Of a DNA stretch of 64,000 nucleotides, positions 24,548-64,000 are shown piece after piece (the stretch's first letter is position 1; each line of letters starts with the position of its first letter). Under the pieces are notes generated by a model. It did not search any database. It had not been told where the DNA came from and worked only from the letters and a program-made list of their open reading frames with translations. Made by a program: the position numbers and the translations under genes. This stretch comes from Oikopleura dioica. Its lineage: Eukaryota; Animalia; Chordata. The stretch covers positions 9,548,001 to 9,612,000 of the forward strand of contig OU015567.1 in the NCBI GenBank assembly GCA_907165135.1, given 5' to 3'.

Positions 24548-26589
24548 TCAGGAGCTCTCTTTTCTACCGACTTCTTGATTTTCTTTCAATTTTGTGAGAG
24601 GCAACCCTGCCCAGTTGAGCTCAGGGCGGGTTTGAATGTGCAAGTGATACAGGCATTTCTTCGCAGCGTCATTTTCAGCATCATCTTGAGATCGTCCTCT
24701 GCCGATGACAGTGATAGGAGGCCGAGTAAAAGTCTTCAAAATGCACTGATACACAGAACGACTGTAAGGACGATTGATATTTGGCTGATTTTCTGAAAGA
24801 TCGAAGGACTGTTTTTGCTTTTCTTCGTCCTCACTTAAATAATTTTATTCGTATAACCGGAACTTCTAGGGTTCCGCACGATCGGAGGACCCAAATTTCA
24901 AAAACCAAAATTAACTATAAGAAATTTTGAAGTTTTAAGTGGGATTGAGGTTTTCGACTATGGCGAAGAAAATGACGATACTTATATTCTGATAACTCTT
25001 AAAATTCGCCGATTTATCTCGGTTTTTCCGGTATATTTCTGTCGCACACGTTCAGTCGCCCTCCCATTTAAAAGAACACCAAAAAATAATAGTTTTTGTT
25101 TTTAAATGAAATTATAACTCAGCGAACTTTTTGTGTGCTGATCAATTAAAGTTTTCAAAACTATTATCATTTTTATTTCCCGCGCGCTGATTGGTCGAAT
25201 TTCTGACTGTGTTGTTCAGATGGAAGAATCTTCAGTCTAGAAAAAGTCGCTTGCGCAGCTGACCAATCAGAGCGCATAAGCCTTTTAAACTTTATATTTT
25301 TAAATAGCTTTAAAATAACCAAAGAAATGGCATTGGGGGGAAACTAGGATCGGATATGGATTCTACTAGTCATTTTTAGTAGAATTTAAAAATTTTGGTA
25401 AATATAAAGTCTCTGTCCGAATCATGCGGAACCCTAGGAACTTCCTATCAGGAGGATGCATAATCAGATGATTTGCTCACCTTTCTGGCAGCTTGATTTC
25501 ATTTTTGCGCTTTAATTTGGGCCACAAAATGACGTACGAGAACTCGACATCCTTTCTGTTCTGGATTTCCTTCAGCTTATCTATCGGTTTCGGCACATAA
25601 TTCCTTAACAATCAAGTTATGAGAGTCCGTCAGACCGATCAATGACCCGCAAACATTGTGGCGCAAAGACAAAGTCCTATAGTTCCCGTGTGACGGCTGC
25701 GTCACAATGCTGATTCGGTAATGGGACAAGTTTAATCTTTCAACAATACCTTGATTCCGCTTCGTCTGTTTTCAAATCCTCGAATTCACCGTCTCTGATT
25801 TCTATGAAACGATTGCATCTGTTTCTGACGCCGTGGCAGAAGAGAATCTCGTCAAACTCCGGCTTTGAGTTCTTATTGTCAGTAACTTCAGCTTGTTTAT
25901 TCTTTGAATCACGATTTTTACGCTCTTGGTCGATTGCGTCTAAAATCAGCTGGGCGCAATTCTTAGCGGCTTGACGTTTTTCTGGAGAATAAGCCATCAA
26001 TACTTTTCCCTAAAGACGGCCCTTTTTAATCTTAAAAAATAACCCAAAATCATACCCTTAAACAGCCAAATTTAACTTTACTCGTATCTTTGAACTTGTA
26101 ATAGTACCGATGAATTTGACAACCCTCTCTCGACGTCATTTCCGAGCCGATTTCATAGTGTTCTTTCTCAACAAGCTTCTTATCTTTAAGGAATTTATCC
26201 ACTTCTCTTTTCGCATCCCCTCGATCCAAATCATATTTACTGCTTGGTAAGACTATGTCCATCAACGCGTCCTGTTCTCGCAGATGGATGAGAATTTTTT
26301 CGCCAAACTGATTTTTTAGCTTCTTCACATCTTTGCCTTTCCACTCTCCAAGAACATTTTCAGAACACTCTTCGAACATCTTCAGATCCTCGAACTCGGA
26401 TCTGCACTCTTTATGCAGTTTGAATTTCAGTTTAGTCTGGCCATCGTTTTCAATCTTTTCTTGGAGCTCGTAGTGCCAGCCGTGTTTTTGGTCCTTATCC
26501 GTTCTTCGAATCAGTGGCGGTTCATTCTTTCTACACCAATCTTCCCATAGTTTGAAGGGTTCTTTTAGCCAGAAATCATTGCTGTTCAT
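24548..26589 (-). CDS. dsRNA-binding protein with a TRBP/PACT/Loqs-like terminal dsRBM, multi-exon
   Basis: The last exon YQCILKTFTRPPITVIGRGRSQDDAENDAAKKCLYHLHI resembles dsRBM3 of PRKRA/TARBP2. The upstream ORFs (25740-26000, 26050-26589) are assigned to the same gene only tentatively. Confidence 0.6.
24867..25436. mobile_element. hAT-family MITE (570 bp), element A, in an intron of the dsRBM gene
   Basis: Imperfect TIRs TAGGGTTCCGCACGATCGGA and TCCGAATCATGCGGAACCCTA. Perfect 8-bp TSD GGAACTTC (24859-24866, 25437-25444). Subterminal homology to elements B and C. Confidence 0.93.
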
Positions 26590-38200: not shown

Positions 38201-41200
38201 ATTGGAATTTCCCTTGACTAATTGATCTAATTTAGAGCCTTTGAGTTCACAGCAATCGTGAAGGAGCGTCGTCTCTGTAAAAGCTGTGCAGAAAATTTTC
38301 ATGGTCGCCAGAACAATTGGCATGAAATCAAGCAGCGAACCGATGCTACCTTCAAGTGTGCTGCCACTCCACAAAGACCATCAGAAGTTGAAGGCTGTGG
38401 TGCAGAGAATCTCACGTACCGCGAGTATATGACAGGAAGCTGCTGCGATAATGCGGCGCGACGACTTCAAGCTGATTTCGAAAATCTGATGTCCGAAGAC
38501 GATCGATACCAGATTTTCAAAATCCTCGAAAAATACTACGACGATGACAAGGAAGATCTCGACGACTCGATTCATAACCTGAATGCCGCGAAAGAAGAGT
38601 CTCGAAAGGCTAAAGAAGAGAAAGACAAAGTTTGCCGAAAAATCAACAACAAGGAAAAAATAAAGGAGCGAATACTGGCCAGACTTGATGGAATTGAAAA
38701 GGAACTTGAAAATGACAAGAAAGATCTTGAAAGCAAGGAAAATCTCTTCAACGCGGCCAAAATGAATGAAGAGTTCAATGATAACCTCACGAAGGAGAAG
38801 CGGAATTCACTCAAACGGCTCGCGAAACCTCTCAATTTCCTTTCTGCAAAAGTCTTCAAGTTCGACCAAGGTAAACTCGATTATCAAAAAATATTTTCAA
38901 TATAAAGGAAGATTAGATGACAATGACACTAAAGGAGAAGCGTCCAAAGCCGCTGATGTCAAAACAGAATATTTCGAAGCTTAGAATCGCTCTATTTTAA
39001 ATTCTAACTTTTACTAGGGTTCCGCACGATTGGACCAAAATTTTTATTTTTAATAAAATTTGGAGATTCTACCAAAAATATGCCTGGGAATTCATTCCTG
39101 GCCTCTGTTTTTCCCGAAAATCCTCCCTTCAGCCCTTTTCAGGGCTTCAAAGTATATTTTGCCAAAGAGGCCTGCTGCACGCTGATTGGCTGGCGCTCTT
39201 CGCGGGAATATAAATCGAGTAATGCAACGAGCTGTCGCCCTGGAGTTGGCTGAGTGGTGAGCGCTTCTCTTCGCAAAGAGGAGATGGCGAGCTCGAAGCC
39301 AGCTCGAACGCACCCCCTTTTCCATGTTTGGCTTTCTAGCTTCAACATGGAAAACGCGGATGGGCCTCGAAAAAGAAAAATTCTTTTTTTGAGTTTCGAG
39401 CTCGTGCCCGTCCGCCAATCCTTTTTGAAGGACTGCGCTCACCACTCGGCCAACAACTATTTGCGGGATGGTTCAGTTTAGCGGATTTTGACTCGAAATT
39501 TCCGGAGTCAAATTTCCGGACATTCGGTGGAAAAATTAAAGAGCTATCATAGATCTTAATTTTGTCAGGAGGGAGTTTTCTTCCTCTTAGGTTTTTTTAA
39601 CAAAATTTTACCTAAAAGTTTTGATCTCGGTCGGAGTTCGCCCTAAAACTGGCTGTATTCCAAGGAATGTTTCCTGTAAACATGCATATTTTATATTTAT
39701 TAAAAGATCCCCCGATTTTCCGAAGTTTCAAAATCTCATTCAAAAGCTCGTCTTTAAATGAGCATATTTTGGTAAAATCAGCTTTCTATCTCAACATTTG
39801 CTTATGTATTAGAGGCCGTCAAATTGTATCTACTTTTATGTGGCCTTTTTAAATGCGAATCTTTTTAAATTGCGAGAAAGTTCAGACCCTAAACTCAATA
39901 TTCTGGAAGAATCAGCATGATCGGGTAAGTGAATAAAAAATTCTAGTTGTAAAACTTTTTGAAACCATTATTGGCGTTTTTTCGGTTTTTAAATGCTCTC
40001 TAGCCCCATTCATTGGCCGAAAATTCTAACGCGGTAATTATATTCGTTGATAAAAATTGAAGCCAAAAATTTTCTCGACAAGATTTCTAGCGCTCGTAAC
40101 TCGAAAACAACAAGTGATAGCAGCTTCTGTTAAATAACAAATGAAATTATGCGTTGAATTCGAACTAATGTCTTTGCGACAAAGTGATTTTCAAAATTTA
40201 TTTTTATAATTCAAAATTTACTGTGGGACAATGACAGATTTTTTAAATTTTCGCGGTATGAGCGCCAGTTCGCGCTGATCTTCCTGTAGGCTTCTTCTTT
40301 TTCTCTCTTCGCGCTGAGTTTTCTGGCTTTTAAAAGCTGCCAACAGCTTTGATTTTGCTTCATGTGGCTTCAGGTCATCAAGCCATTCGTTCAGCTTGTT
40401 GAATTTGGCTCGCCCGTTTTCGTACATCTTTTCGCGGCACAGATTTTGGATTGACTTCTCGAATCCCTTGAGTGTGGCAAAGGACGATTCTTAATTTAAA
40501 TTCAGATATGCTTTATTCAAAAAAGACTTACCGACTGCTCTGTTCGAACAACTTATTTTTCGATCGTCTGGCAAATCGAGATCCTTGAGAAGCCCGAAAT
40601 CCTTCACGTACTTCTTCAAACTTCCACCGACAACAGCAACAGCAACAGTGTTCAGTCGCTTGATTCTTGTTGCGGAAACCTTTTGGAATCTTTCCTCAAT
40701 CAATTCCACGGTTTTTTTAGACTCCTCGGATGAAGACATCAGAGCCGCCTTCTCCAAAAGACACGAATACGGCTCGTTTGAATCAACAATTGTCTTCATT
40801 CGCTGAATTACTGATTGGAACAAATCCTTCAACCCAAGGAAAGACAAGGCTTCGTTGTTCACTTTTGAGATCTTCTTGTGGAAATGATTAATGTTCGCGC
40901 AATAGTTCAGGAACAATGTTGCAGCGTCGAGCAAAACCCCATTATCTCGGCCGGAGCAAAGTTTGTGGATCTGGTGAAATTTGCTGTCCTCAAAGCTTCT
41001 TGCCATCATGTGTTTTGTCGCGTTCATAACCGTCGGGAAATGTCTCACAAGAGCGCCCGAGTTGCGACAGTCATTTCCAAAGCGCTTTCCTATTAATATA
41101 AATTAAGAAAAGTCATTTGAAGGAAAATTACCTAGATCGTGAGAGAAAATCTTTGTTCTGGTGCTTTCCATATCGTATTTGAGCAGCAGCTGTAGCGACC

Positions 41201-44200
41201 GGCGACCATCTTGTTGGACGTACCCAAATTTTTCTGGTTTTCCGAAGACACTCTTCACAAGTTCCAGTAAGGTGAACGCTTCTTCATTGACCTCTTTTAA
41301 CGCACAACGGCTGTTCTTGTCACAATTTGCGACGCAGTGCATCGCACAAAAGAGTGATGGAGGTGCGTCCTTGTTGATTTCCCGCGTCAGTTTTTCTGCA
41401 ACAACCGCGTTTGCGTTGATTTGAGCTGACTGCTGATCTGACATAAGGAGATCAATCTTCTCGCCGATTATTCGTCCCAAACCGGTTTTGTTGACGATCC
41501 CAATCATTTGGTCGGCGATTATCTGACTTGTACCTCCGATCGCAAGCTCGGTCCCGATGAGATGAAGCTTGCCAGACTCGTTTATGAGCCCGACTGAAAT
41601 CGTTTTTGATGCATCCAACATGGCTGCTCCGTCACTCGCGAGGTGGAATCGTTTGCCCTTGAGAATGACGTCTTTGGTGTGCTCTTCGTTCAAATACTTT
41701 AATGAATCTCGAAGTCGCTCAAACCAGTCAGGAGATGGAACTCTTTTTTCTTCGCCAAGAAGCTCGGGATAATACTTCGCTGTCGTTTTGAAGAAGTTGT
41801 GGATGCTGCTTGCGGTTTCTCCTTTTATCAGCATCTCCAGCGATAAGTTGATAAATTTGGGGCTCCAGGTTTTGTTATCTCCACCTTTACCGTAATTTGG
41901 GAGCCATGCGCTACGTAGAAAAATATCGTTTATTCCTCCAACTGCAATTCGTTTTTTCTCATCATTTTCGTTCTCAATTTCTTCTGCTCCTACGACTTCT
42001 ACCATTTCTATGGCTTTTCCAGCTTCTTCATCCTCATCTGATCCCGGCAGCCATTCTTCCTCTTGCTCACTTGAATCTTCAAGAAAAGCTTCATTCATCA
42101 AGCTTTCATTCGCCTCATTCTCTTCGTTGATTTCAGTCGCCTGCAAAACTTGCGACAGCCCAGTTGAACGCTTACCAAGTTCTTTTGCATCGAAATGAAT
42201 GGAATCTTCCTTGCAAAAAAACTCATTGTCGTCACGAAACCAGCGTTCAAGATCTCGCCGAACCTGATTCTTCTTCTTCGCAAGTTTCATCCCCTTTATG
42301 CAGTTGTCAAAGACACACTCAGGTTTCGCCGTGATAATATCTACGAAATTTTAAGCAAAGATCGGCGTATAAAACTTATACCTTCAAGATAAGGAATAAT
42401 CACTCGAGTAAATCCCGAAGAATTTCCGGAATTCTTTTCTGCAATCTTACGCCATTCTTCTGGATTCTCTAGAAGCGCGGAGATATTCTCTTGAGTAAGG
42501 CCCAAAAATCGAAATTTTTGCTCGTTGGCTGGACGATGAGTGGCGCACGGATGAATTTGACGAAACTACTCTTCGAAAAAGAAAACATATTCTTCCGACA
42601 AAAATACGAATAAAGATATCCGAATGATTCGAATTTACGAATGAGATTTCAATTTCCAAAGAGTAAGAGAAAAAAAGAGATCTAGAAAAGCGGAAGTCTT
42701 GAAATCTAGAAAAGATTTGATTCTCGAAAGAATGGAGAGTCTAGAAATTATTGAATACTTATTGTTTCGGAAACTTTCGTCTGAGAAACTTATGGCAGAA
42801 TCTTTTGGTAGACTGATTCTAGAGGTAGATTGCTTATGCATGTCACGGCCCTTAAATTCAAAAATCATGGAAAAGGGCTGAGACGGCCCGAAGTGGAAAA
42901 ACTGTGGAAAAAATTGCGATTATCACGCTCAGTACAATTTATATGCTTTTAACGACTTTTGAGGGCCAGAATTTCGGGTTAAAATGTTCGTAAAGGGGGA
43001 GTGTGATTCAACAAAATGATCCTCAGAATACCGGGAATCTAAACATGCCATAAAGAGACCTGTGATTAAGAGTTGAAAAAACAGGGGAAAATCCCTTAAT
43101 TTCAAAAACCAAGGAGCGAGGGAAGGAGGGGAATCGGCCATTCGGGCCGTCAAGCTCAATTAAAATTCAAGGCGAGGCAAAGGAATTATAACGACGGGCG
43201 GTTGAAAAAATTTTGTACGGGCATGGGCGCCCGCCGAAGACGAAAAACTTTTTCGTTGATTTCAAATTATCCAGCCCTGCGAAAAAGGCAAAGGAATTGA
43301 AAGCTGCGCAAGTTTCAAAAGTTCAAAATCGAAAACTCCCAAAGTGTATGGAACCGAAACGGCGAAAAACGCACTGGGATTATCTTCTGGACGACGTGAA
43401 GTGGATAGCCACGGAATTAACTGGCAAAAGCAAAATGACGCGGCTTTTAGAAGTTATTCGCAAGTGGGGGAATTCTTTAGGCGCGCTTTCTGAGTATCGC
43501 AATATTCTAATGACCATGAAAAACGAGGAAAAGAAGCTCAATCTTCGGCCTCTAACGCCAGACACAGCGGATGATAGATGTTTCGATCAGACGAATCACA
43601 AATCAAAAATCGAGCTATTGGAAGAAGACGCTAAAACTCTCCTGCACATGATTTGCGATTTGGACAAGCTTTACCCGGACGTAAAAGTCAAAAGATCGGA
43701 ACTTCCCAAAATTGCAGAAAAAGACCTTCGCGAAAAAGCAGCGAATCCAAGAACTTCAAATAATCAAAAACATCGAGCACAACTTTCGCTTTGACATTGA
43801 ACTAGCCCAGTACCAGCAACCGCTGATTTTTTTCATTGAAATCGAGTCCTGAGAATGTCTTCCATATCAGCCAATCAGAGCGCACCTCCTCAATTTTCAC
43901 AAAGTGATAAATAGCGGATAATTTTAAATGGACAGCACACAAAAACCTTGATTTTTTTTGCTCTTTTTTCAATAGATTTGTGATTTTTAGAATTGTTTTT
44001 ATCTACTGTGTTAAAGAAAAGTTTGTGCTGCCACTAGAAGTATGAAAAACCGAGAGAAATCGGCGACTCTGATGATGAATCGGAATTTAACTATCATCAT
44101 TTTTTTCGCCGTATTCGAAAACCTAAACTTTATAAAGAGTCTATTCTTAATACAATATGGATCTGGATTTTGAAAAATAAGGTCCTCCAATCGTGCGGAA

Positions 44201-45811
44201 CCCTAACTTTTACTGCCATAGATACCAAATATAAAAAATTGGAAAGCGCTTACCGGACTGTAATTTCCAGCAATTGCGTGGCAATCTTCGGTCCATAAGA
44301 CACCTTTGATTCAATCTTCGTCAGGTCCAGAAGCACATTCAAATACCACTCGAAATTCTTGATAAAAACGAATCCCTGCTGGCTGCACATGTCGATCATC
44401 TTCGAAACTAGCTCATCTCGGTAGATTGTATTTTCAGTCTTTCGTACGTGGTCGAGTAGTTTCGCTGTAATGTCCATTATCGTTGATTTCGTGACCATTT
44501 TACTAAATAAGCTTGGTACAGAAATAGTCAGAAAAGTCAAAAACCTGATGAGGTCTAAAGCTCGAAGCCGAATGCTTTCATCTTTGTCGTCAAGACACGC
44601 AAGAATTATGTCCTTGTGTTGGCTTACAATCTTCGGGTGCGATTCTGAAGGATAATATTCAATAAGGCTCTTTATTTTCTGCTTTTACCAAGAATCCGAG
44701 TCATTGAAAGAAGCCCAAGATACTTCAAATTCTGATCATTATCTTCAATAAGAATTCTAAGCTTATCCACGCAGAGTTGTATCAACGCTTCATTGTCATT
44801 TCCAGCAGGAGCGTATGTCTTCGCCTGGAAAAATAAATAACACTTATTTGACAGCGCGACTGTACCTGAATCAATGTATTGATGCATTCGTATAGCAAGC
44901 TCATTGCGCTGGTATTATTAATTAGCGTCTTCAAATTCTCTTCAATCTTCTTGCCCAGTCTTGGTTCGTGGGGAATCAAGCATCCGAATAATTTGATAAT
45001 TTTAATGAGCACCCAATTATTCGAACTCTTGGTCATCAATCGCATTAAAATCGGGCTCAAGAGCAGGTAGTTCTTTGGATTCTTCCTTGCAAGCTCGCAA
45101 ATGACATTTACAGCGGCAGATTGCACTCCTGGGTCCTTGTCTTCTAGCTTTTCTTTGAGACGAGGCATGGCAGCGCGCATCGCTTCTGGGTAGTGGTAGA
45201 ACAGTTTGTAAGTTATTAATGTAGCGCGTTTTCGAACATGAGGTCGGGTAGATGACATCAGCGAAATGACATCATCGGTCAAGTCTCGGGCAAGATCAGG
45301 CGTCATGAAACAGGATAGACCGCCGAGAGCAGCGCTAGCTTCGAATTCGGAACCTTTGAGGATGTCCTTCTTGATCAAATTCGTTGAGAGCATGAGAACA
45401 TCGGTCTCAGCGTTGAATGATTGAGAGGCAGCCCAGTAGCCCAAGCGCTTTTCGGTCAACTTTTTCGTGGTTTTCATTCGTCAAAAACACGTCCTAACTA
45501 TCATCTAAGTAAATTCAGTAATGAACCAGTTCCTTAGTCGAGGACATAACTTCAATAATATTAAAACTCGCCCAGCCCATCTCATATCCTAGCATGTGAA
45601 GGAAGCAGAGCTTCGAAATCGCCACCGATTTCACATCTAATTTCGGGTTCTTCAGCTCCTCCCTAATTTCCTCGACTGCTTCCAAAATGTACTCGCGTTC
45701 GTGACCTTTTGCGTTTCGAACTCCTCGGACGAGGTCTTGGAGGGTCTTGTCGAAAATGCGGTCGATGCCGGTTTTCACCTTCGACCCAACTTTTTTCATT
45801 GCCACATCCAT
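35223..45811 (-). CDS. AP3D1: AP-3 complex subunit delta
   Basis: IDRIFDKTLQDLVRGVRN, EKRLGYWAASQSF, LKEKLEDKDPGVQSAAVNVICELARKNPKNYL, DNDQNLKYLGLLSM, NFEWYLNVLLDL and AAVICGEF. A 7.06-kb intron (37192-44253) splits LEITVR|VRTLREY in frame. Confidence 0.96.
37470..37850. mobile_element. Mutator (MULE)-type MITE, 381 bp
   Basis: 31-bp perfect TIR GAGTGGTCTCCGTTTGCCCAAGTCGCCGTTT, 9-bp TSD CGATGCGCT (37461-37469, 37851-37859) and internal repeats of CGTTTGCCCAA. Confidence 0.88.
38108..38984 (+). CDS. Cys-rich (degenerate RING/TRAF-type Zn finger) coiled-coil protein nested antisense in the AP3D1 intron
   Basis: CSNC...CKSC...C...C...CC followed by a long E/K coiled coil. GT-AG introns near 38185 and 38870. 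Confidence 0.65.
40218..42841 (-). CDS. Spliced DDE transposase (hAT-like)
   Basis: FHLASDG (D1), LLMSDQ (D2), CAMH (CxxH), and SNRAVESSFA after splicing (catalytic E). Long stop-free exons at 41103-42290, 40491-41048 and 40218-40490. The start codon is uncertain. Confidence 0.8.
43213..43794 (+). CDS. Transposon-borne accessory ORF with an HSA-like motif of EP400/SRCAP/Domino type
   Basis: LPKCMEPKRRKTHWDYLLDDVKWIATE (43336-43416) resembles LPKLQE..RPK.HWDYLLEEM.W.A.D. The track start is TTG and the first in-frame ATG is 43348, so an upstream exon may exist. Confidence 0.7.
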   Translation: MYGHGRPPKTKNFFVDFKLSSPAKKAKELKAAQVSKVQNRKLPKCMEPKRRKTHWDYLLDDVKWIATELTGKSKMTRLLEVIRKWGNSLGALSEYRNILMTMKNEEKKLNLRPLTPDTADDRCFDQTNHKSKIELLEEDAKTLLHMICDLDKLYPDVKVKRSELPKIAEKDLREKAANPRTSNNQKHRAQLSL

Positions 45812-54922: not shown

Positions 54923-55573
54923 ATGGGTGCTAACAACTCAAGGTACAACGATTTTTTATTTTGATTTTGATTAAATTGGGTACAAGCTTGAAAGATGTCA
55001 AATTTGGCGATCTCGAGGCAAAAGACATTGATGGAGCTACAGTGAAAATGAGCGAGTTCCTTGGCAGTCCGACAATTGTTGTAAATGTTGCGTCGCAATG
55101 AGGCGTGACTGACCGAGAGTATACCCAACTTCAGGAACGGTTCTCAGCTCATGAATAAACAAGCTCTCATAACTCAGATGTGACCTAATTAAAGCAACTT
55201 AAAAATACTTTCGGCGACGACCTTAACATACTCGCTTTTCCCTGCAATCAATTTGGCAAGCAAGAGCCCGGAAGCGCCCAAGAAATCAAAGAATTTGTTA
55301 AAAAGTAAGTCCAAAAAACCTAGCCAAGTTGTCATTTTCTTAAGATATAATTTCACTGGCCGACTTTTCTCCAAAATTGACGTGAATGGAAACGATGCTC
55401 ATCCAGTATTCCAGTGGCTAAAAGCACAAAAAGCAGGGGCCGGAACACTGACTGACAATGTCAAGTGGAACTTCACGAAGTTTCTGCTCGATAAGCAAGG
55501 CAATGTCGTCGGCAGATGGGGCACTGTCACCGCCGCTGGAGATTTGGAAAAAGAAATTAGAAAGCTTTTATAA
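54923..55573 (+). CDS. Selenocysteine glutathione peroxidase (GPx4/PHGPx-like)
   Basis: VNVASQ-TGA(55099-55101)-[17 protein letters not shown] and [10 protein letters not shown]. One GA-AG intron (55135-55194). Confidence 0.92.
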
Positions 55574-55999: not shown

Positions 56000-57358
56000 A
56001 TGAAACTTTTAAGCATTTTTCTTGTCGCCGCTGTTTTTGGACAGGAGAAAGCTGAGAAGCCAGAGAATTGGTGGAAACTACAGAAGATCAAGCAAAACCG
56101 TCTAGAGAGAATGCAAAGGAAGCAGATGACATCGACAAAGGTCATTACAACAACCGAGGCACCAACAACTACGACATCTACAACAACCACAACGGCATTC
56201 GTCAAGCCTAGAAAGACCAATAAAAAGAAGAGAAAGAACCGCAAAAATGGCAAAAACGTTGACTATTCAACCTACTTCGATTTGAACACAGAAAATCTTG
56301 CCCTTGACGATGTCACTAACCCAAAATCACCAAATGACAAAAATAAAAGCATTTTTTCGATGGGCCGAAGTCAAGGAAAAGGTCAAGATAATGGCATTCA
56401 TCCGAATACGCGAAAGATAGCTGGAATGCTCAGGAACCGGTTGAAAAAAAACGACTCTAAAAATAGATACGGTTAATACTTTGAGTCATCGTTTCCAACT
56501 CTTACGATAAGACACCGAATGCTCGCAATGGGAATCCAAATTCGCTTCCTGGATTTACTTGGCTACGGGTGCTGGTGTTCATTCCTTATCAGACATGATT
56601 TACGGTATGCACGTTTCATAGTACGATATGCGCTTAATAAATATATCTATCGTTAGACCACGGAACAAGGAACCGTCGGATAAGATCGACGAAATCTGCC
56701 GCAAATGGTCAAAGTGCCACGAATGCTCCTCAATTGATAGCTACTATCAATGTTCTGCCCAAGGACACGATGTTTATCAAGTACAGGGAATAATTGCAAC
56801 GGGAAAATTTACATGCGCCAGTAAGTAAAAATCCTTTTGATTGATATTTTTTCCCAAACCAAAGTCCGGAACAGGCGATTCCTACGGGCTCCTGATTGAT
56901 ATACTAAGTCAGAATAGTAAGCTTATAATTTTCAGGTAACGAGGACAGTTGCGCTCTACGTGCATGCGAATGCGATACGGAACTTGTTTACAAGGTAATC
57001 AATCATTCAAGGAAGTTTGCTCACTAATTTTTTTGTCTTCAGCTTTCCGATCTATTGGCGAACGACCCGAAGAACTTTAACATAATGAACAGCTACGAAA
57101 AGGGCTTTAGTCCCTATTTCCAGTGCATCGAAAAAAGAATGATGACCGATAGAAAGTCTGATAAATGCTGTGGACAGTTTCCCGACCGGTAAGTCAATGT
57201 CTTAGTTTAAGCGGTACGAATAGTTCAGATTTCCATTCTGGTCAAATATGAGCCAAAAAGCCTGCTGCGGGTCCAAAACTTACGATGTCAACCTGTTTGA
57301 CTGCTGCCAAGGAGCCAAGCTTGTGCCAAAATCTATGACCTGCCCTAGACAATTGTAA
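56000..57358 (+). CDS. Secreted Cys-rich protein with a phospholipase A2-like domain
   Basis: Signal peptide, Thr-rich and basic N-terminus, LLGYGCWC...DKIDEICRKWSKCHEC...CALRACECD...KCCGQFP...ACCG, with GT-AG introns. Confidence 0.75.
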
Positions 57359-58029
57359 ATAACTCCCTGCTTGTTCTTTTTTAAAATACACATAACTTCG
57401 ATATCACCAGACTTTATTTAAATCAGATTCTTCAGGAATAAGAATTTCAAAGCGTTGTATTTGTTCATGGTTAGTAAAGTAACGAATAACGGCACGTATC
57501 TGTTGCTCAGAGATTTTTACAAAGGAAGGGAAGGGTTGAGCTACAGTTAGGTGGAAAAGATCTTCAGAAGAAGATTGTTGAATCTGGGTTGGCCGGCGGC
57601 GTGAAACGGAGGCTGGCGAGGTTCAAAACCGATTGTGAGCTTTGCCAGCCCCGGATTCACGAAAGAGTCACGCAGATGAATCTCGGAGAGTTTCACCACG
57701 TTAGGGGGCGCGCAAGCCTCCGCAGACGAAAATTGCGAATTTTGTTAGTAACTGTTCAAGAAGATAATGTTCAAATGTACTTTTGTACTCAGTAATTGAT
57801 ACCGCGATTTGGTAGAAAGAAAATTGTCTCGTGGGGCACCAGTTATGACATCTGGAGTTCAAATCGAAATTAATCGGAAAAGAAGAGCCTAAGCACTTGT
57901 TCGTTGAAACTCAGAATGTTGGTTTTCATTTTTTTAGTTTTGGTTAAAAGGCTAAAATTTAAAGCGATAGAGAAAATAAAGTAAGAGAGAAAGATAGCTT
58001 TCCCGATAATGACGAGAAAGATCCTCGAT

Positions 58030-61000
58030 TTACATCATTTGTCGGGCGAGAGCGAATCCTCGGCTTTGATCAGTGCCTGGTCCAACTGGCTCTCGGATTT
58101 GAGATACCTGTCGTTTCAAGACCTTAAAATGTTATTTCCTATTTTTGATAAGCTTTTGTACCTTTTCAGTAGCAAAACCAGGGCTAAGCTTTCCTGAGTT
58201 GTCATCTGAGATCTCTGAGAGATTGTCTCCATGTCCAGAATCTTGGCTAAACGAAGAGATAGGATTTCATTGTTAAATATCTAATTTACCAGGAGCCAGA
58301 AATGATAGATTTATCTAGGGTTCCGCACGATTGGAGGACCTTATTTTTCAAAATCCGAATCCTTATTATATCAAAAATAGACTTTGTATAAACTATGGGT
58401 TTTCGAATACGGCGAAAAAAATGATGACAATAATATTCCGATTCACCATCGGAGTCGCCGATTTCTCTCGGTTTTTCATACTTCTAGTGGCAGCACAAAC
58501 TTTTCTTTAACACTGTAGATAGAATCAACCCTAAAAATCACAAATCTGCAAAAACAAATTTAAAAAAATTCAAGGTTTTAATGTGCTGTCCATTTGAAAA
58601 TTATCCATTATTTATCATTATGTGAAAATTGAGGAGGCGCGCTCTGATTGGCTGATGAGGAAGACATTCTCAAGGGTCGATTTGAAGGAAGATTATTCTA
58701 AGCTTCCGCGATTTTGTCCTTGTTGGTGAATAAGCCCTTTCTCGATAAAATTTTAAATAGAAACCATAACAAAGTAAAAATCTTGGATAATTTGACTTTT
58801 AACAACAATGGGTGAGGGCGGGGTTGGGGACATAACTGAGATTGATCACCTCAGAGTCCAACGCCGATCTCAAGCCCCTTAAATTAAAAAATCAAGGAAC
58901 GGGGCTGAAACGGCCCGAAGGGCCGTCAAGCCCCTTAAATTAAAAATCAAGGAACGGGGCTGAAACGGCCCGAAGGGCCGTCAAGCCCCTTAAATTAAAA
59001 ATCAAGGAACGGGGCTGAAACGGCCCGAAGGGCCGTCAAGCCCTTAAATTAAAAATCAAGGAACGGGGCTGAAACGGCCCGAAGGGCCGTCAAGCCCCTT
59101 AAATTAAAAATCAAGGAACGGGGCTGAAACGGCCCGAAGGGCCGTCAAGCCCCTTAAATTAAAAATCAAGGAACGGGGCTGAAACGGCCCGAAGGGCCGT
59201 CAAGCCCCTTAAATTAAAAAATCAAGGAACGGGGCTGAAACGGCCCGAAGGGCCGTCAAGCCCCTTAAATTAAAAATCAAGGAACGGGGCTGAAACGGCC
59301 CGAAGGGCCGTCAAGCCCCTTAAATTAAAAATCAAGGAACGGGGCTGAAACGGCCCGAAGGGCCGTCAAGCCCTTAAATTAAAAATCAAGGAACGGGGCT
59401 GAAACGGCCCGAAGGGCCGTCAAGCCCCTTAAATTAAAATCAAGGAACGGGGCTGAAACGGCCCGAAGGGCCGTCAAGCCCTTAAATTAAAAATCAAGGA
59501 ACGGGGCTGAAACGGCCCGAAGGGCCGTCAAGCCCCTTAAATTAAAAATCAAGGAACGGGGCTGAAACGGCCCGAAGGGCCGTCAAGCCCCTTAAATTAA
59601 AAATCAAGGAACGGGGCTGAAACGGCCCGAAGGGCCGTCAAGCCCCTTAAATTAAAAATCAAGGAACGGGGCTGAAACGGCCCGAAGGGCCGTCAAGCCC
59701 TTAAATTAAAAATCAAGGAACGGGGCTGAAACGGCCCGAAGGGCCGTCAAGCCCTTAAATTAAAAATCAAGGAACGGGGCTGAAACGGCCCGAAGGGCCG
59801 TCAAGCCCCTTAAATTAAAAATCAAGGAACGGGGCTGAAACGGCCCGAAGGGCCGTCAAGCCCCTTAAATTAAAAATCAAGGAACGGGGCTGAAACGGCC
59901 CGAAGGGCCGTCAAGCCCCTTAAATTAAAAATCAAGGAACGGGGCTGAAACGGCCCGAAGGGCCGTCAAGCCCTTAAATTAAAAATCAAGGAACGGGGCT
60001 GAAACGGCCCGAAGGGCCGTCAAGCCCCTTAAATTAAAAAATCAAGGAACGGGGCTGAAACGGCCCGAAGGGCCGTCAAGCCCCTTAAATTAAAAATCAA
60101 GGAACGGGGCTGAAACGGCCCGAAGGGCCGTCAAGCCCCTTAAATTAAAAATCAAGGAACGGGGCTGAAACGGCCCGAAGGGCCGTCAAGCCCCTTAAAT
60201 TAAAAAATCAAGGAACGGGGCTGAAACGGCCCGAAGGGCCGTCAAGCCCCTTAAATTAAAATCAAGGAACGGGGCTGAAACGGCCCGAAGGGCCGTCAAG
60301 CCCCTTAAATTAAAAAATCAAGGAACGGGGCTGAAACGGCCCGAAGGGCCGTCAAGCCCCTTAAATTAAAAATCAAGGAACGGGGCTGAAACGGCCCGAA
60401 GGGCCGTCAAGCCCCTTAAATTAAAAATCAAGGAACGGGGCTGAAACGGCCCGAAGGGCCGTCAAGCCCCTTAAATTAAAAAATCAAGGAACGGGGCTGA
60501 AACGGCCCGAAGGGCCGTCAAGCCCCTTAAATTAAAAAATCAAGGAACGGGGCTGAAACGGCCCGAAGGGCCGTCAAGCCCCTTAAATTAAAAAATCAAG
60601 GAACGGGGCTGAAACGGCCCGAAGGGCCGTCAAGCCCCTTAAATTAAAAAATCAAGGAACGGGGCTGAAACGGCCCGAAGGGCCGTCAAGCCCCTTAAAT
60701 TAAAAAATCAAGGAACGGGGCTGAAACGGCCCGAAGGGCCGTCAAGCCCTTAAATTAAAAATCAAGGAACGGGGCTGAAACGGCCCGAAGGGCCGTCAAG
60801 CCCTTAAATTAAAAATCAAGGAACGGGGCTGAAACGGCCCGAAGGGCCGTCAAGCCCTTAAATTAAAAATCAAGGAACGGGGCTGAAACGGCCCGAAGGG
60901 CCGTCAAGCCCCTTAAATTAAAAATCAAGGAACGGGGCTGAAACGGCCCGAAGGGCCGTCAAGCCCCTTAAATTAAAAAATCAAGGAACGGGGCTGAAAC

Positions 61001-63890
61001 GGCCCGAAGGGCCGTCAAGCCCCTTAAATTAAAAATCAAGGAACGGGGCTGAAACGGCCCGAAGGGCCGTCAAGCCCCTTAAATTAAAAATCAAGGAACG
61101 GGGCTGAAACGGCCCGAAGGGCCGTCAAGCCCCTTAAATTAAAATCAAGGAACGGGGCTGAAACGGCCCGAAGGGCCGTCAAGCCCCTTAAATTAAAAAA
61201 TCAAGGAACGGGGCTGAAACGGCCCGAAGGGCCGTCAAGCCCTTAAATTAAAAAATCAAGGAACGGGGCTGAAACGGCCCGAAGGGCCGTCAAGCCCTTA
61301 AATTAAAAAATCAAGGAACGGGGCTGAAACGGCCCGAAGGGCCGTCAAGCCCTTAAATTAAAAATCAAGGAACGGGGCTGAAACGGCCCGAAGGGCCGTC
61401 AAGCCCCTTAAATTAAAAATCAAGGAACGGGGCTGAAACGGCCCGAAGGGCCGTCAAGCCCCTTAAATTAAAAAATCAAGGAACGGGGCTGAAACGGCCC
61501 GAAGGGCCGTCAAGCCCCTTAAATTAAAATCAAGGAACGGGGCTGAAACGGCCCGAAGGGCCGTCAAGCCCCTTAAATTAAAAATCAAGGAACGGGGCTG
61601 AAACGGCCCGAAGGGCCGTCAAGCCCTTAAATTAAAAATCAAGGAACGGGGCTGAAACGGCCCGAAGGGCCGTCAAGCCCCTTAAATTAAAAATCAAGGA
61701 ACGGGGCTGAAACGGCCCGAAGGGCCGTCAAGCCCCTTAAATTAAAAATCAAGGAACGGGGCTGAAACGGCCCGAAGGGCCGTCAAGCCCCTTAAATTAA
61801 AAATCAAGGAACGGGGCTGAAACGGCCCGAAGGGCCGTCAAGCCCCTTAAATTAAAAATCAAGGAACGGGGCTGAAACGGCCCGAAGGGCCGTCAAGCCC
61901 CTTAAATTAAAAAATCAATGAACGGGGCTGAAATGGCCATCCGTGTTTTCCAAGCTAGAAAGCTTTTGAAAAAAATGAGACACGGGTTGGATTCGAGCTC
62001 GCCATCTCGTCTGCGCGAAGAGAAGCGCTCACCACTCAGCCAACTCCAGGGTGACAGCGCAGTGCAGTACTCGATTCATATTCCCGCGAAGAGCGCCAGC
62101 CAATCAGCGCGCAGCAGGCCTCCTTGGCAAAATATACTTTGAAGCCCTTAAAAGGGCTGAAGGGGGATTTTCTGGAAAAACAGAGGCCAGGAATGAATTT
62201 CTAGGCATTATTTTGGTGGAATCTCCAAATTTTATTAAAATGAAAAATTTTGGTCCAATCGTGCGGAACCCTAGATTTATCGTCAGAAATAGAAGAACCA
62301 TCGTCAGATCCAAGCTTGCCCTGAGCAGCAAGTCGATCTTGTCTGTAAAGAGTTCTTCGCATTCGCGGTCCCAAAAGGGCCAATCTCATTCCAGTTTCAC
62401 TGAATAAAAACTTTAACCAGCCGTTGTTATCTTTTCCGGACTCACCAGAAATTCTCTTTGAGCTCTCTGACAGCCTTGAGGGCTGCTTCAGAGCTTTCAA
62501 AATCAACGACGGCGCAGAGGCTGTCTCCAATGTCCGGCACTTGGGTGGCGTAGTTGCGCAAGTCAGAAGGAACCTCCTTGCCTGGCCGGAGGAGTCGGAC
62601 GAGGCCGATGTCTCCGTACTCGCGGAACATGGTGGTGATCTGGTCAACGCTGTCGAACTCTGGAGGCACTCGGATCGCAACAACAGAAGTGAGCAGTCTT
62701 GGCTTTCGGAGGGTTTCCGGAAGGATGTCTCGTCGTTTGACACGGTACCCTTGAAGTAAAGACGTTATATCACGTTTATGGTCACTTTTGTTTTTCCGAA
62801 ATTTTGAGGTCTTTTTAGATTTCTATATTTTTATTATTCCAAAAATGAAAAATTTGGAAAAAAATATAAACACCAATTTTAACAGGCTTTTATGGTTATT
62901 TCTTAATCAATCATTACCTTCAGGTGAAACCTCCAGCTGCGGAGCTAATTTGAGAGCATGTCGAACAACTCGCCAGTCTCTTGTGAGCTTTTTGACCTTT
63001 TTGAAGCTTGTCATAAGCTTTTTTCTTGGTTCACAACTGAGCTTCTGTACTTAATTGATGTTGAATAAGAATAAATTTGCTAAAAAACTTCGAGAAATAA
63101 AAGTTAGGAACCATTCCTTGATGGAGATATAGCCCTCGGATTTGCATCGGATTTGTCGGAGGAGATATTTGTCTTTGGCAAGGTACTCGTCGGAAAGATA
63201 ATACTCCACCTGATCGATGATAGCTTCTGATTCTTCCTGAGTTGGCGCGTCGTAGTCGCCCTCGTCCGAGTACTGGATCACACCGGAATCATTCGACGAG
63301 CCACCTAGTTTTCAAAACAGTTACAATCTGGGGATTAGAAGATAGGAGCATCAGCGACTGATGCTGAACCTGATTCTCCAGAGTTGCGACGCTGTCGTGG
63401 AGATTTTGAGTTGTCGTTGATGCGCATGCGCTCTGCTTGTTGAGCGATTTCCTCAATCTCAGCAAGTTGAATGCTGCCGCGTTGCTTGATTGGGACGTAT
63501 TTGTTCTGAACAAGAAAGGTTATTTCATTTCCTTCGAACCATGTTCAATAGTGCTAGGCCTCATGATGAGCATTTTATCAAATCATTAAAATTCAGTTTT
63601 TTTCCTTACTCTCATTATTGGCGCGCTCTTATGGTGTTTACCTTTGAGGGAGATTTTCTTCCTCGTGAGTTTGATTTCTTGCCGCTGGAGTTGATAGAGT
63701 CACGTGAGTCGATGGAACTGTTGTGTGATTCAGTGCGAACGAGACCTTCGCCGTTGTGGCCCAGGAAAGCATCGGGATGGCCTCCTGCTGGGATAAAGAC
63801 GGGAATTTGTTCGGCTGGCCAGGGCATGAAGGGGTGATGGGGGCTCGGATGGGCCGAGTATGCTGGCACGAAGCCTCCCACAGGAGCATA
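58030..63890 (-). CDS. LARP6: La-related protein 6 (Acheron), 5' end beyond the resolved region, interrupted by element C
   Basis: La motif QVEYYLSDEYLAKDKYLL...GYISIK...LMTSFKKVKKLTRDWR, RRM YGDIGLVRLLRPGKEVP...CAVVDFE, and C-terminal LSA-like IREPVGPGTDQSRGF ending at the stop at 58030. Confidence 0.92.
58316..62273. mobile_element. Non-autonomous hAT derivative (3958 bp), element C, inverted relative to B
   Basis: Same 20-bp TIR and 8-bp TSD GATTTATC (58308-58315, 62274-62281). About 370 bp at each end is homologous to the opposite ends of B. Confidence 0.96.
58871..61934. repeat. Tandem satellite, about 55 copies of a 54-56-bp unit
   Basis: Unit CAAGCCCCTTAAATTAAAAATCAAGGAACGGGGCTGAAACGGCCCGAAGGGCCGT. 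Copies differ almost only in C- and A-run length. Confidence 0.98.
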
Positions 63891-64000
63891 TCTGAAAGGA
63901 AAGAAATGCTTATCTTGCGATAATTAATGAGAGAGTACATAAGTTGGCATCCAAAGTGGCGGCTATTTGCACGATTTGGCTCACTCTGAGCGTTTAGAAG

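Follow-up and report, generated by a model that had tools for sequence, protein, structure and literature searches.

Insertions of Ac and Ds elements into maize exons were, in the work of Wessler and colleagues from 1987 to 1989, reportedly spliced out in part by means of cryptic splice sites at the ends of the element. PMC3443670 enters Zea under 'transposon insertion' among intron gains and also lists transposon insertion as a proposed route of intron gain in Oikopleura. Introners are intron-creating DNA transposons in which the element and its target-site duplication (TSD) provide the splice sites (PMC11282704), and PMC13326754 and PMC11282704 describe, after Henriet et al. 2019, non-canonical introns derived from miniature inverted-repeat transposable elements (MITEs) in the larvacean Fritillaria borealis. 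In Oikopleura dioica, GA donors have AG upstream and A downstream (PMC7072748). Here we analyse 64,000 nt of O. dioica DNA (assembly GCA_907165135.1, contig OU015567.1, positions 9,548,001 to 9,612,000 of the forward strand), to which we refer as the window and from whose first base all coordinates are counted. A 3,958-bp element in this window, element C, interrupts exon 8 of a LARP6 gene on the minus strand. The reading that we favour, and hold to be probable, is that element C is a recent non-autonomous hAT-type insertion allele in the reference haplotype OKI2018_I69, that this allele is by default truncating or null, and that the 3,984-nt intron annotated at this place is a gene predictor's bridge over the insertion.

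Element C occupies window positions 58316-62273 and is read here in gene orientation, on the minus strand. We found that its 19-nt terminal inverted repeats (TIRs), TAGGGTTCCGCACGATTGG, at 58316-58334 (+) and 62255-62273 (–), match with 0 mismatches against a chance expectation of 0, and that they are flanked by a perfect 8-bp TSD, which is GATTTATC on the plus strand and GATAAATC on the sense strand. At the upstream side the sense strand runs through TCTGAC and GATAAATC into TAGGGTTCCGCACGATTGG; at the downstream side it runs through CCAATCGTGCGGAACCCTA into GATAAATC and TATCATT. The parts of the element and its borders are as follows, a slash marking a candidate splice site here and below.

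62274-62281, minus strand: upstream TSD copy, GATAAATC in sense.
62255-62273, minus strand: 5′ TIR in gene orientation, carrying the candidate GG donors and AGG/GT.
62231-62236, minus (sense) strand: AATAAA hexamer, 38 nt inside element C and upstream of the read-through stop.
62201-62203, minus strand: first in-frame read-through stop (TAG), by frame translation.
58870-61938, no strand assigned: satellite core, 55-bp unit, 55.8 copies, 98% matches.
58316-58334, minus strand: 3′ TIR in gene orientation, whose end forms with the first TSD base the candidate acceptor CCCTAG/ (intron end 58315).
58308-58315, minus strand: downstream TSD copy; RNA reads and contigs depart from the window exactly after 58315.

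The hAT superfamily is marked by 8-bp TSDs and TIRs that begin with TAG, and the TIRs of Ac/Ds begin with (T/C)AG. In the window, the 19-nt terminus occurs six times, as three inverted pairs where chance would give zero, and these pairs delimit element C and two relatives, copies A and B. The 8-bp TSD is perfect in all three copies, and TAGGGTTCCGCACGATTGG has a (T/C)AG-type start at both ends with 0 mismatches. By these termini and duplications, element C belongs to the non-autonomous DNA transposons of hAT type. Over 287-376 bp at its termini it shares 87.5-92% identity with the ends of copy B (5.2 kb), which also holds one 52-nt seed copy of the satellite unit of element C.

24867-25436, no strand assigned: copy A, a 570-bp MITE-like relative; TSD GGAACTTC; no coding open reading frame (ORF) across the site.
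39015-44205, no strand assigned: copy B, 5,191 bp; TSD ACTTTTAC; intergenic, outside exons.

Judged by its domains, the host gene is a LARP6 orthologue, with a La motif followed by a LARP6-type RRM. A metatranscriptome contig recovered by a metagenome pattern scan (L001), which is a complete spliced mRNA from a diverged lineage, encodes a 467-aa product that matches Pfam La (2.9e-21) and has as its top PDB hits the La motif (2mtf, 2e-22) and the RRM (2mtg, 1e-10) of human LARP6. A second mRNA (L003, a Logan contig of the seawater metatranscriptome X1, encoding protein P0064) is of the same lineage as the window. We built the gene model by aligning both mRNAs to the locus and found 10 true introns, nine of them GT-AG and one GA-AG. 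Exon 8 is 144 nt long, a multiple of three, and introns 7 and 9 on either side of it are both phase 2. The features of the gene that bear on the insertion are listed in the order of transcription.

63018-63116, minus strand: intron 5, GA..AG, 99 nt, atcaag/GAATGG; two independent mRNAs aligned.
62400-62445, minus strand: intron 7, GT..AG, 46 nt; the first exon base is a synonymous single-nucleotide polymorphism relative to the mRNAs.
62282-62399, minus strand: exon 8, upstream part (to 62274 with the TSD copy); mRNA alignments.
58290-58307, minus strand: exon 8, downstream part, 18 nt; reads and mRNA alignments.
58247-58289, minus strand: intron 9, GT..AG, 43 nt; 288 spliced reads and one contig.
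58123-58161, minus strand: intron 10, GT..AG, 39 nt; 290 spliced reads and one contig.
58042-58098, minus strand: LSA / SUZ-C-like C-terminal motif, IREPVGPGTDQSRGFALAR; absent from the read-through product.

Over its last 30 residues the protein aligns (E 2e-5) to the C terminus of an ascidian LARP6-like protein (P0056), which bears SUZ-C, while Pfam SUZ-C itself is undetected in the Oikopleura tail. On this alignment, the LSA-like C-terminal tail of Oikopleura LARP6 is probably real, though not called by Pfam.

The evidence that element C is an insertion polymorphism comes from the site without it. Reads were aligned to window positions 57750-58869, on the downstream side of element C. In a raw oligo-dT RNA run (X24), 461 reads extend up to the final TSD base, 58315, and carry on as 62282 onward; a 1,735-nt contig of metatranscriptome X1 shows the same continuity, and RNA depth is zero across 58320-58869, the part of element C that the alignment covered. 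The X24 reads are only 90-95% like the window and thus come from another lineage. X1 and L003 are of the window's own lineage: P0064 and the protein annotated at this locus (P0006) are identical in 458 of 465 aligned columns and differ by one substitution and a six-residue gap. Both L001 and L003 are full spliced mRNAs with an intact, uninterrupted site, and a metagenome scan designed to catch each of three spliced forms (a gap of 1, 16 or 25 nt) returned one contig, of the empty-site form. In DNA, contig 8 of a run with the same species label (X25) follows 58055-58315 without mismatch and then runs for 147 letters off the TIR, which is probably the empty site, and genomic ORFs of other lineages (P0062, P0065 and P0066) have the uninterrupted site beside the unspliced 43-nt intron.

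The RNA junctions observed are of the empty-site form only, from sources not known as carriers, and they keep exactly one TSD copy. We rejected a precise splicing out of the Fritillaria type: the 3,966-nt gap has 11 equivalent placements, none of which is G-N..AG, and the empty site is found in DNA as well. Because one TSD copy is kept and no placement is G-N..AG, the reads show an empty allele, not splicing; since all RNA, together with a DNA contig of the same species, has the empty site, the insertion is not fixed. The empty site is ancestral, exists as DNA and is the form expressed both by the wild population of the same lineage and by a sister lineage, and the insertion allele is so far seen only in the reference assembly. 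In X24, ~38% of spliced reads have a synonymous G>C (+ strand) at window position 58292, in the last codons of exon 8, where the aligner lists a second 'joint' at 58247/58293; this is an allele of the X24 strain, not alternative splicing.

When element C and one TSD copy are removed, the frame runs without interruption through SISDDKSIISGS, the 43-nt intron and C-QDSG. Read-through into element C instead gives DDKSRVPHDWTK and, after 23 TIR-encoded residues ending in NA, the stop at 62203-62201. How the insertion is built, the exon-intron structure of the gene, a site that is empty in RNA and probably in DNA, and what the annotated model amounts to are observations; from them we infer the fate of the insertion-allele transcript. 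Most likely, the flanking short introns would still be removed and element C would be retained in a giant exon. Either the reading frame would end 23 codons into the TIR, or the AATAAA at 62236-62231, which may act as a premature poly(A) signal, would shorten the transcript; in both cases the last 60 residues, with the LSA/SUZ-C-like tail, would be lost, which would make this a truncating or null LARP6 allele. An earlier sequence-only reading of this stretch had placed element C inside a LARP6 coding exon, with a continuous frame once the element and one TSD are taken away, a read-through stop at 62201 at the cost of the LSA motif and a 43-nt intron at 58247-58289. The exact TIRs, the TSD, the La and RRM matches, our translations and the 288 spliced reads and one contig across that intron bear out each of these points, and the fallback of that reading, a truncating insertion allele, fits the empty site in all RNA and in the same-species DNA contig.

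Several observations weigh against a truncating allele. The RNA comes from no proven carrier, so efficient splicing of the insertion allele is possible, and there are three or four in-frame routes by which element C could be removed. About 11-12% of O. dioica introns are non-GT-AG (PMC8008620), and, as AUGUSTUS used intron hints, reads may have backed the 3,984-nt intron. As to whether the insertion occurs elsewhere, which the sequence-only reading had raised, we can answer with the empty site in the X25 contig and the three ORFs, whereas none of the read sets examined gave an independent sighting of the filled allele. We leave a small but appreciable chance that carriers splice out the 4-kb hAT element, via GT (62298) and AG (58315) or via a TIR GG donor, and that the reference shows a polymorphic newborn intron. 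If so, the locus would show the birth of a chordate intron at the population level, which is rarely seen, in a species known for massive unexplained intron turnover.

The canonical form of such splicing is the one in the public annotation. Homology search led to CAG5112448.1 (P0006; Oidioi.mRNA.OKI2018_I69.chr2.g6664.t1), an O. dioica protein of 459 aa that lacks DGSSIS relative to P0064 and whose locus in GCA_907165135.1 (OU015567.1) is 100% identical to window positions 56530-64000.

58315-62298, minus strand: g6664.t1 intron, 3,984 nt, GT..AG, donor gacgatg/GTTCTT, acceptor CCCTAG/.

A coding sequence rebuilt with this intron (62298-58315) translates exactly into P0006. The donor is a GT at 62298, 17 nt upstream of the TSD, and the intron takes out 17 nt of exon, the upstream TSD copy, element C and the first base of the downstream TSD copy. 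This donor, which is canonical and in frame with the CCCTAG/ acceptor, is absent from the sequence-only reading. In silico, in-frame removal by splice sites of the element and its TSD is feasible by GT 62298 to AG 58315 and by two GG options: TAG/GG (intron start 62270) joined to 58246, and CTA/GG (intron start 62271) joined to CCCTAG/. The AGG/GT donor (62269) is out of frame with both acceptors, and skipping of exon 8, from the intron 7 donor (62445) to the intron 9 acceptor (58247), is also in frame. The sequence-only reading had given the same frames for the AG/GG, A/GG and AGG/GT joins, and frame arithmetic agrees with it.

We scored donor strength as the number of matches to CAG/GTAAGT over nine positions. 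The seven true LARP6 donors inside the window have 5-7/9 matches; among the candidates, the annotated GT (62298) has 4/9, TAG/GG 3/9, CTA/GG 2/9 and AGG/GT 3/9, and we found no donor-like site scoring at least 6/9 between 62401 and the native donor at 58289. The CCCTAG acceptor is preceded by a GC-rich tract with 2 T in 15, from which most LARP6 acceptors differ. The TIRs can pair in the pre-mRNA (~–53 kcal/mol, computed); such pairing could draw the two flanks close, at the price of burying the TIR splice sites. In the 5.8-billion-cluster protein collection (lengths 257-817, 99-315 and 37-117 aa), we looked for the TIR-encoded tail, the six-residue deletion, an IISGS deletion and an NKS insertion and found only the annotation itself.

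That carriers remove the annotated intron, 62298 to 58315, and make a 459-aa LARP6 without DGSSIS but with the LSA tail is, in our judgement, unlikely, even though it is the most credible rescue route among the splice models. The model agrees exactly with CAG5112448.1, is in frame and has canonical dinucleotides; a similar GTTC donor (cag/GTTCAG) is in use at LARP6 intron 4; RNA-seq intron hints were fed to the annotation; and TIR pairing can join both sides. However, its donor falls under every real LARP6 donor inside the window, its acceptor follows the unusual GC-rich tract, the six-residue deletion is in no transcript or protein found save the prediction, and DGSSIS is conserved across other O. 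dioica lineages. This intron is probably an artefact of prediction. AUGUSTUS produced the annotation, and its intron and exon hints came from RNA of a laboratory culture rather than of the sequenced male (PMC8008620). With culture RNA of the empty allele, the exons on either side would be supported and the gap between them would be non-canonical, and a predictor limited to allowed splice pairs would choose the nearest in-frame GT..AG; most likely, then, the annotated 'intron' is the gene predictor bridging two well-supported exon blocks over an insertion absent from the pooled culture RNA. In the public model g6664.t1, what is predicted as a 3,984-nt intron is in fact a transposon, and six conserved residues are missing from the protein.

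Exon skipping, in which carriers would join the 62445 donor to the 58247 acceptor and drop the 144-nt exon 8 with element C, appears distinctly improbable to us. It would lose 48 residues and keep the tail, the exon length and the two phase-2 introns allow it, and both splice sites are strong and proven. The segment dropped, however, contains the highly conserved block ETGMRLALLGPRMRRTLYRQDRL, and no such protein was found in the protein collection; moreover, with introns of 40-50 nt this genome is probably intron-defining, so that small introns would be removed independently.

The headline of the sequence-only reading was that a GG donor in the TIR (TAG/GG or CTA/GG) is spliced to the native acceptor at 58247 or to CCCTAG/, and this we find very improbable. 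Both joins are in frame, introns of the GV-AG type are known in this tunicate group (PMC13326754), and LARP6 itself uses a GA-AG intron. Against this stand the 2-3/9 consensus matches and the T at +3 of the TIR GG candidates, where the GA donors of O. dioica have AG upstream and A downstream (PMC7072748). Among the junctions and loose ends listed for reads over 57750-58869, a listing that stops short of 38 weaker loose ends and whose reads are not from known carriers, there is none at the TIR and no extra one at 58246, where only the normal 43-nt intron appears; with the zero depth across 58320-58869, the claim gains no support. The same reading had suggested other exonic insertions of the family as a check for the same donor, but copies A and B lie outside coding exons, so the window offers no family-wide pattern, no set of many introns per family and no family-level sign of tolerated exon insertions. 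Its statement that this genome uses GA and GG donors holds for GA, by the intron at 63116-63018 in two mRNAs; the example it gave, at 55135, rests on frame and homology by eye.

That element C is an assembly artefact, present at this site in no animal, is scarcely credible: the read sets examined gave no independent view of the filled junction, and the protein collection contains no ORF of the filled allele, but the exact 8-bp target duplication and exact TIR termini are the signature of transposition, not of a chimeric join, and removal of element C with one TSD copy recovers the insertion-free sequence precisely.

Copy B is the probable autonomous relative of element C. Pfam matches nothing in its long ORFs (395 and 185 aa), a transposase domain included, and in a protein-atlas feature search of these ORFs all named neighbours are hAT-type RNase-like proteins (ZBED1, FAM200/ZBED5, DUF659 and DUF4371), with scores of 0.78-0.80 that amount to a lead only. 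The second ORF (43213-43794, +) has a sub-threshold Pfam HSA match (E 1.3e-4, 22.7 bits against a cutoff of 23). Within element C, a 16-nt subterminal inverted motif, CAGCCAATCAGCGCGC with its complement, lies at 58639-58654 and 62097-62112, ~170-330 bp inside the ends, and may be a transposase-binding or CCAAT-like promoter motif. Look-alikes of tRNA box A and box B (TGGCTGAGTGG ... GAGCTCGAATCC) occur in the subterminal segment at ~61990-62050 (–), where neither ARAGORN nor Rfam finds a tRNA.

Elsewhere in LARP6, introns 1 and 2 are 1,637 and 592 nt long (L002 1523-3159 and 3236-3827; beyond and at the end of the window, 66196-63892), very long compared to the genome median of ~49 nt; we checked both for TIR elements, as possible older transposon-derived introns, and found none obvious. 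A 54-aa JGI protein named 'xylulokinase' (P0063) shares the cluster of P0006 with LARP6 proteins, which is probably a clustering or naming oddity. The example at 55135 belongs to a glutathione-peroxidase-like gene (window 55080-55300, +), with an apparent GA..AG intron (cttcag/GAACGG ... ttaaag/). An in-frame TGA in this gene, in the context NVASQ-TGA-G, is likely a selenocysteine codon.

A single animal of a very heterozygous species supplied the reference, and the RNA is from pooled or wild animals; mapped to such a reference, this RNA makes a private transposon insertion look like a TSD-bounded "intron". Like the maize Ac/Ds cases, element C is of hAT type, has an 8-bp TSD and lies in a coding exon, with possible donors close to one end and acceptors at the other end or downstream, and in-frame, slightly altered products are possible; unlike maize Ds, for which spliced RNAs were shown experimentally, its candidate sites are weak and known from sequence alone. 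It shares with introners the TIRs and TSD in coding sequence and an acceptor AG made from the TIR end and a TSD base. Introners, however, are short, are demonstrably spliced and have many intron copies in many genes, whereas element C is 4 kb, mostly satellite and of unproven splicing, with copies A and B outside exons.

The introns of F. borealis, as described in PMC13326754 and PMC11282704, offer a likeness within the same animal class, with transposon-derived intervening sequences between direct repeats and a permissive U2 spliceosome. However, they have AG/AC and AG/AT ends, ~95% non-GT/AG introns and a duplicated U2AF, whereas LARP6 here has nine GT-AG introns and one GA-AG intron, which is typical of O. 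dioica. That GA-AG intron (63116-63018) has AG before and A after its GA, like other O. dioica GA-AG introns (PMC7072748; PMC8008620); the TIR candidates, in contrast, are GG with T at +3. The closest likeness is to an ordinary transposon insertion polymorphism, which is in the assembly, is absent from other DNA and RNA and has a perfect TSD and TIRs. The heterozygosity of OKI2018_I69 is reported as ~3.6%, and on the evidence element C is indistinguishable from an ordinary insertion polymorphism in the reference haplotype of a highly heterozygous species.

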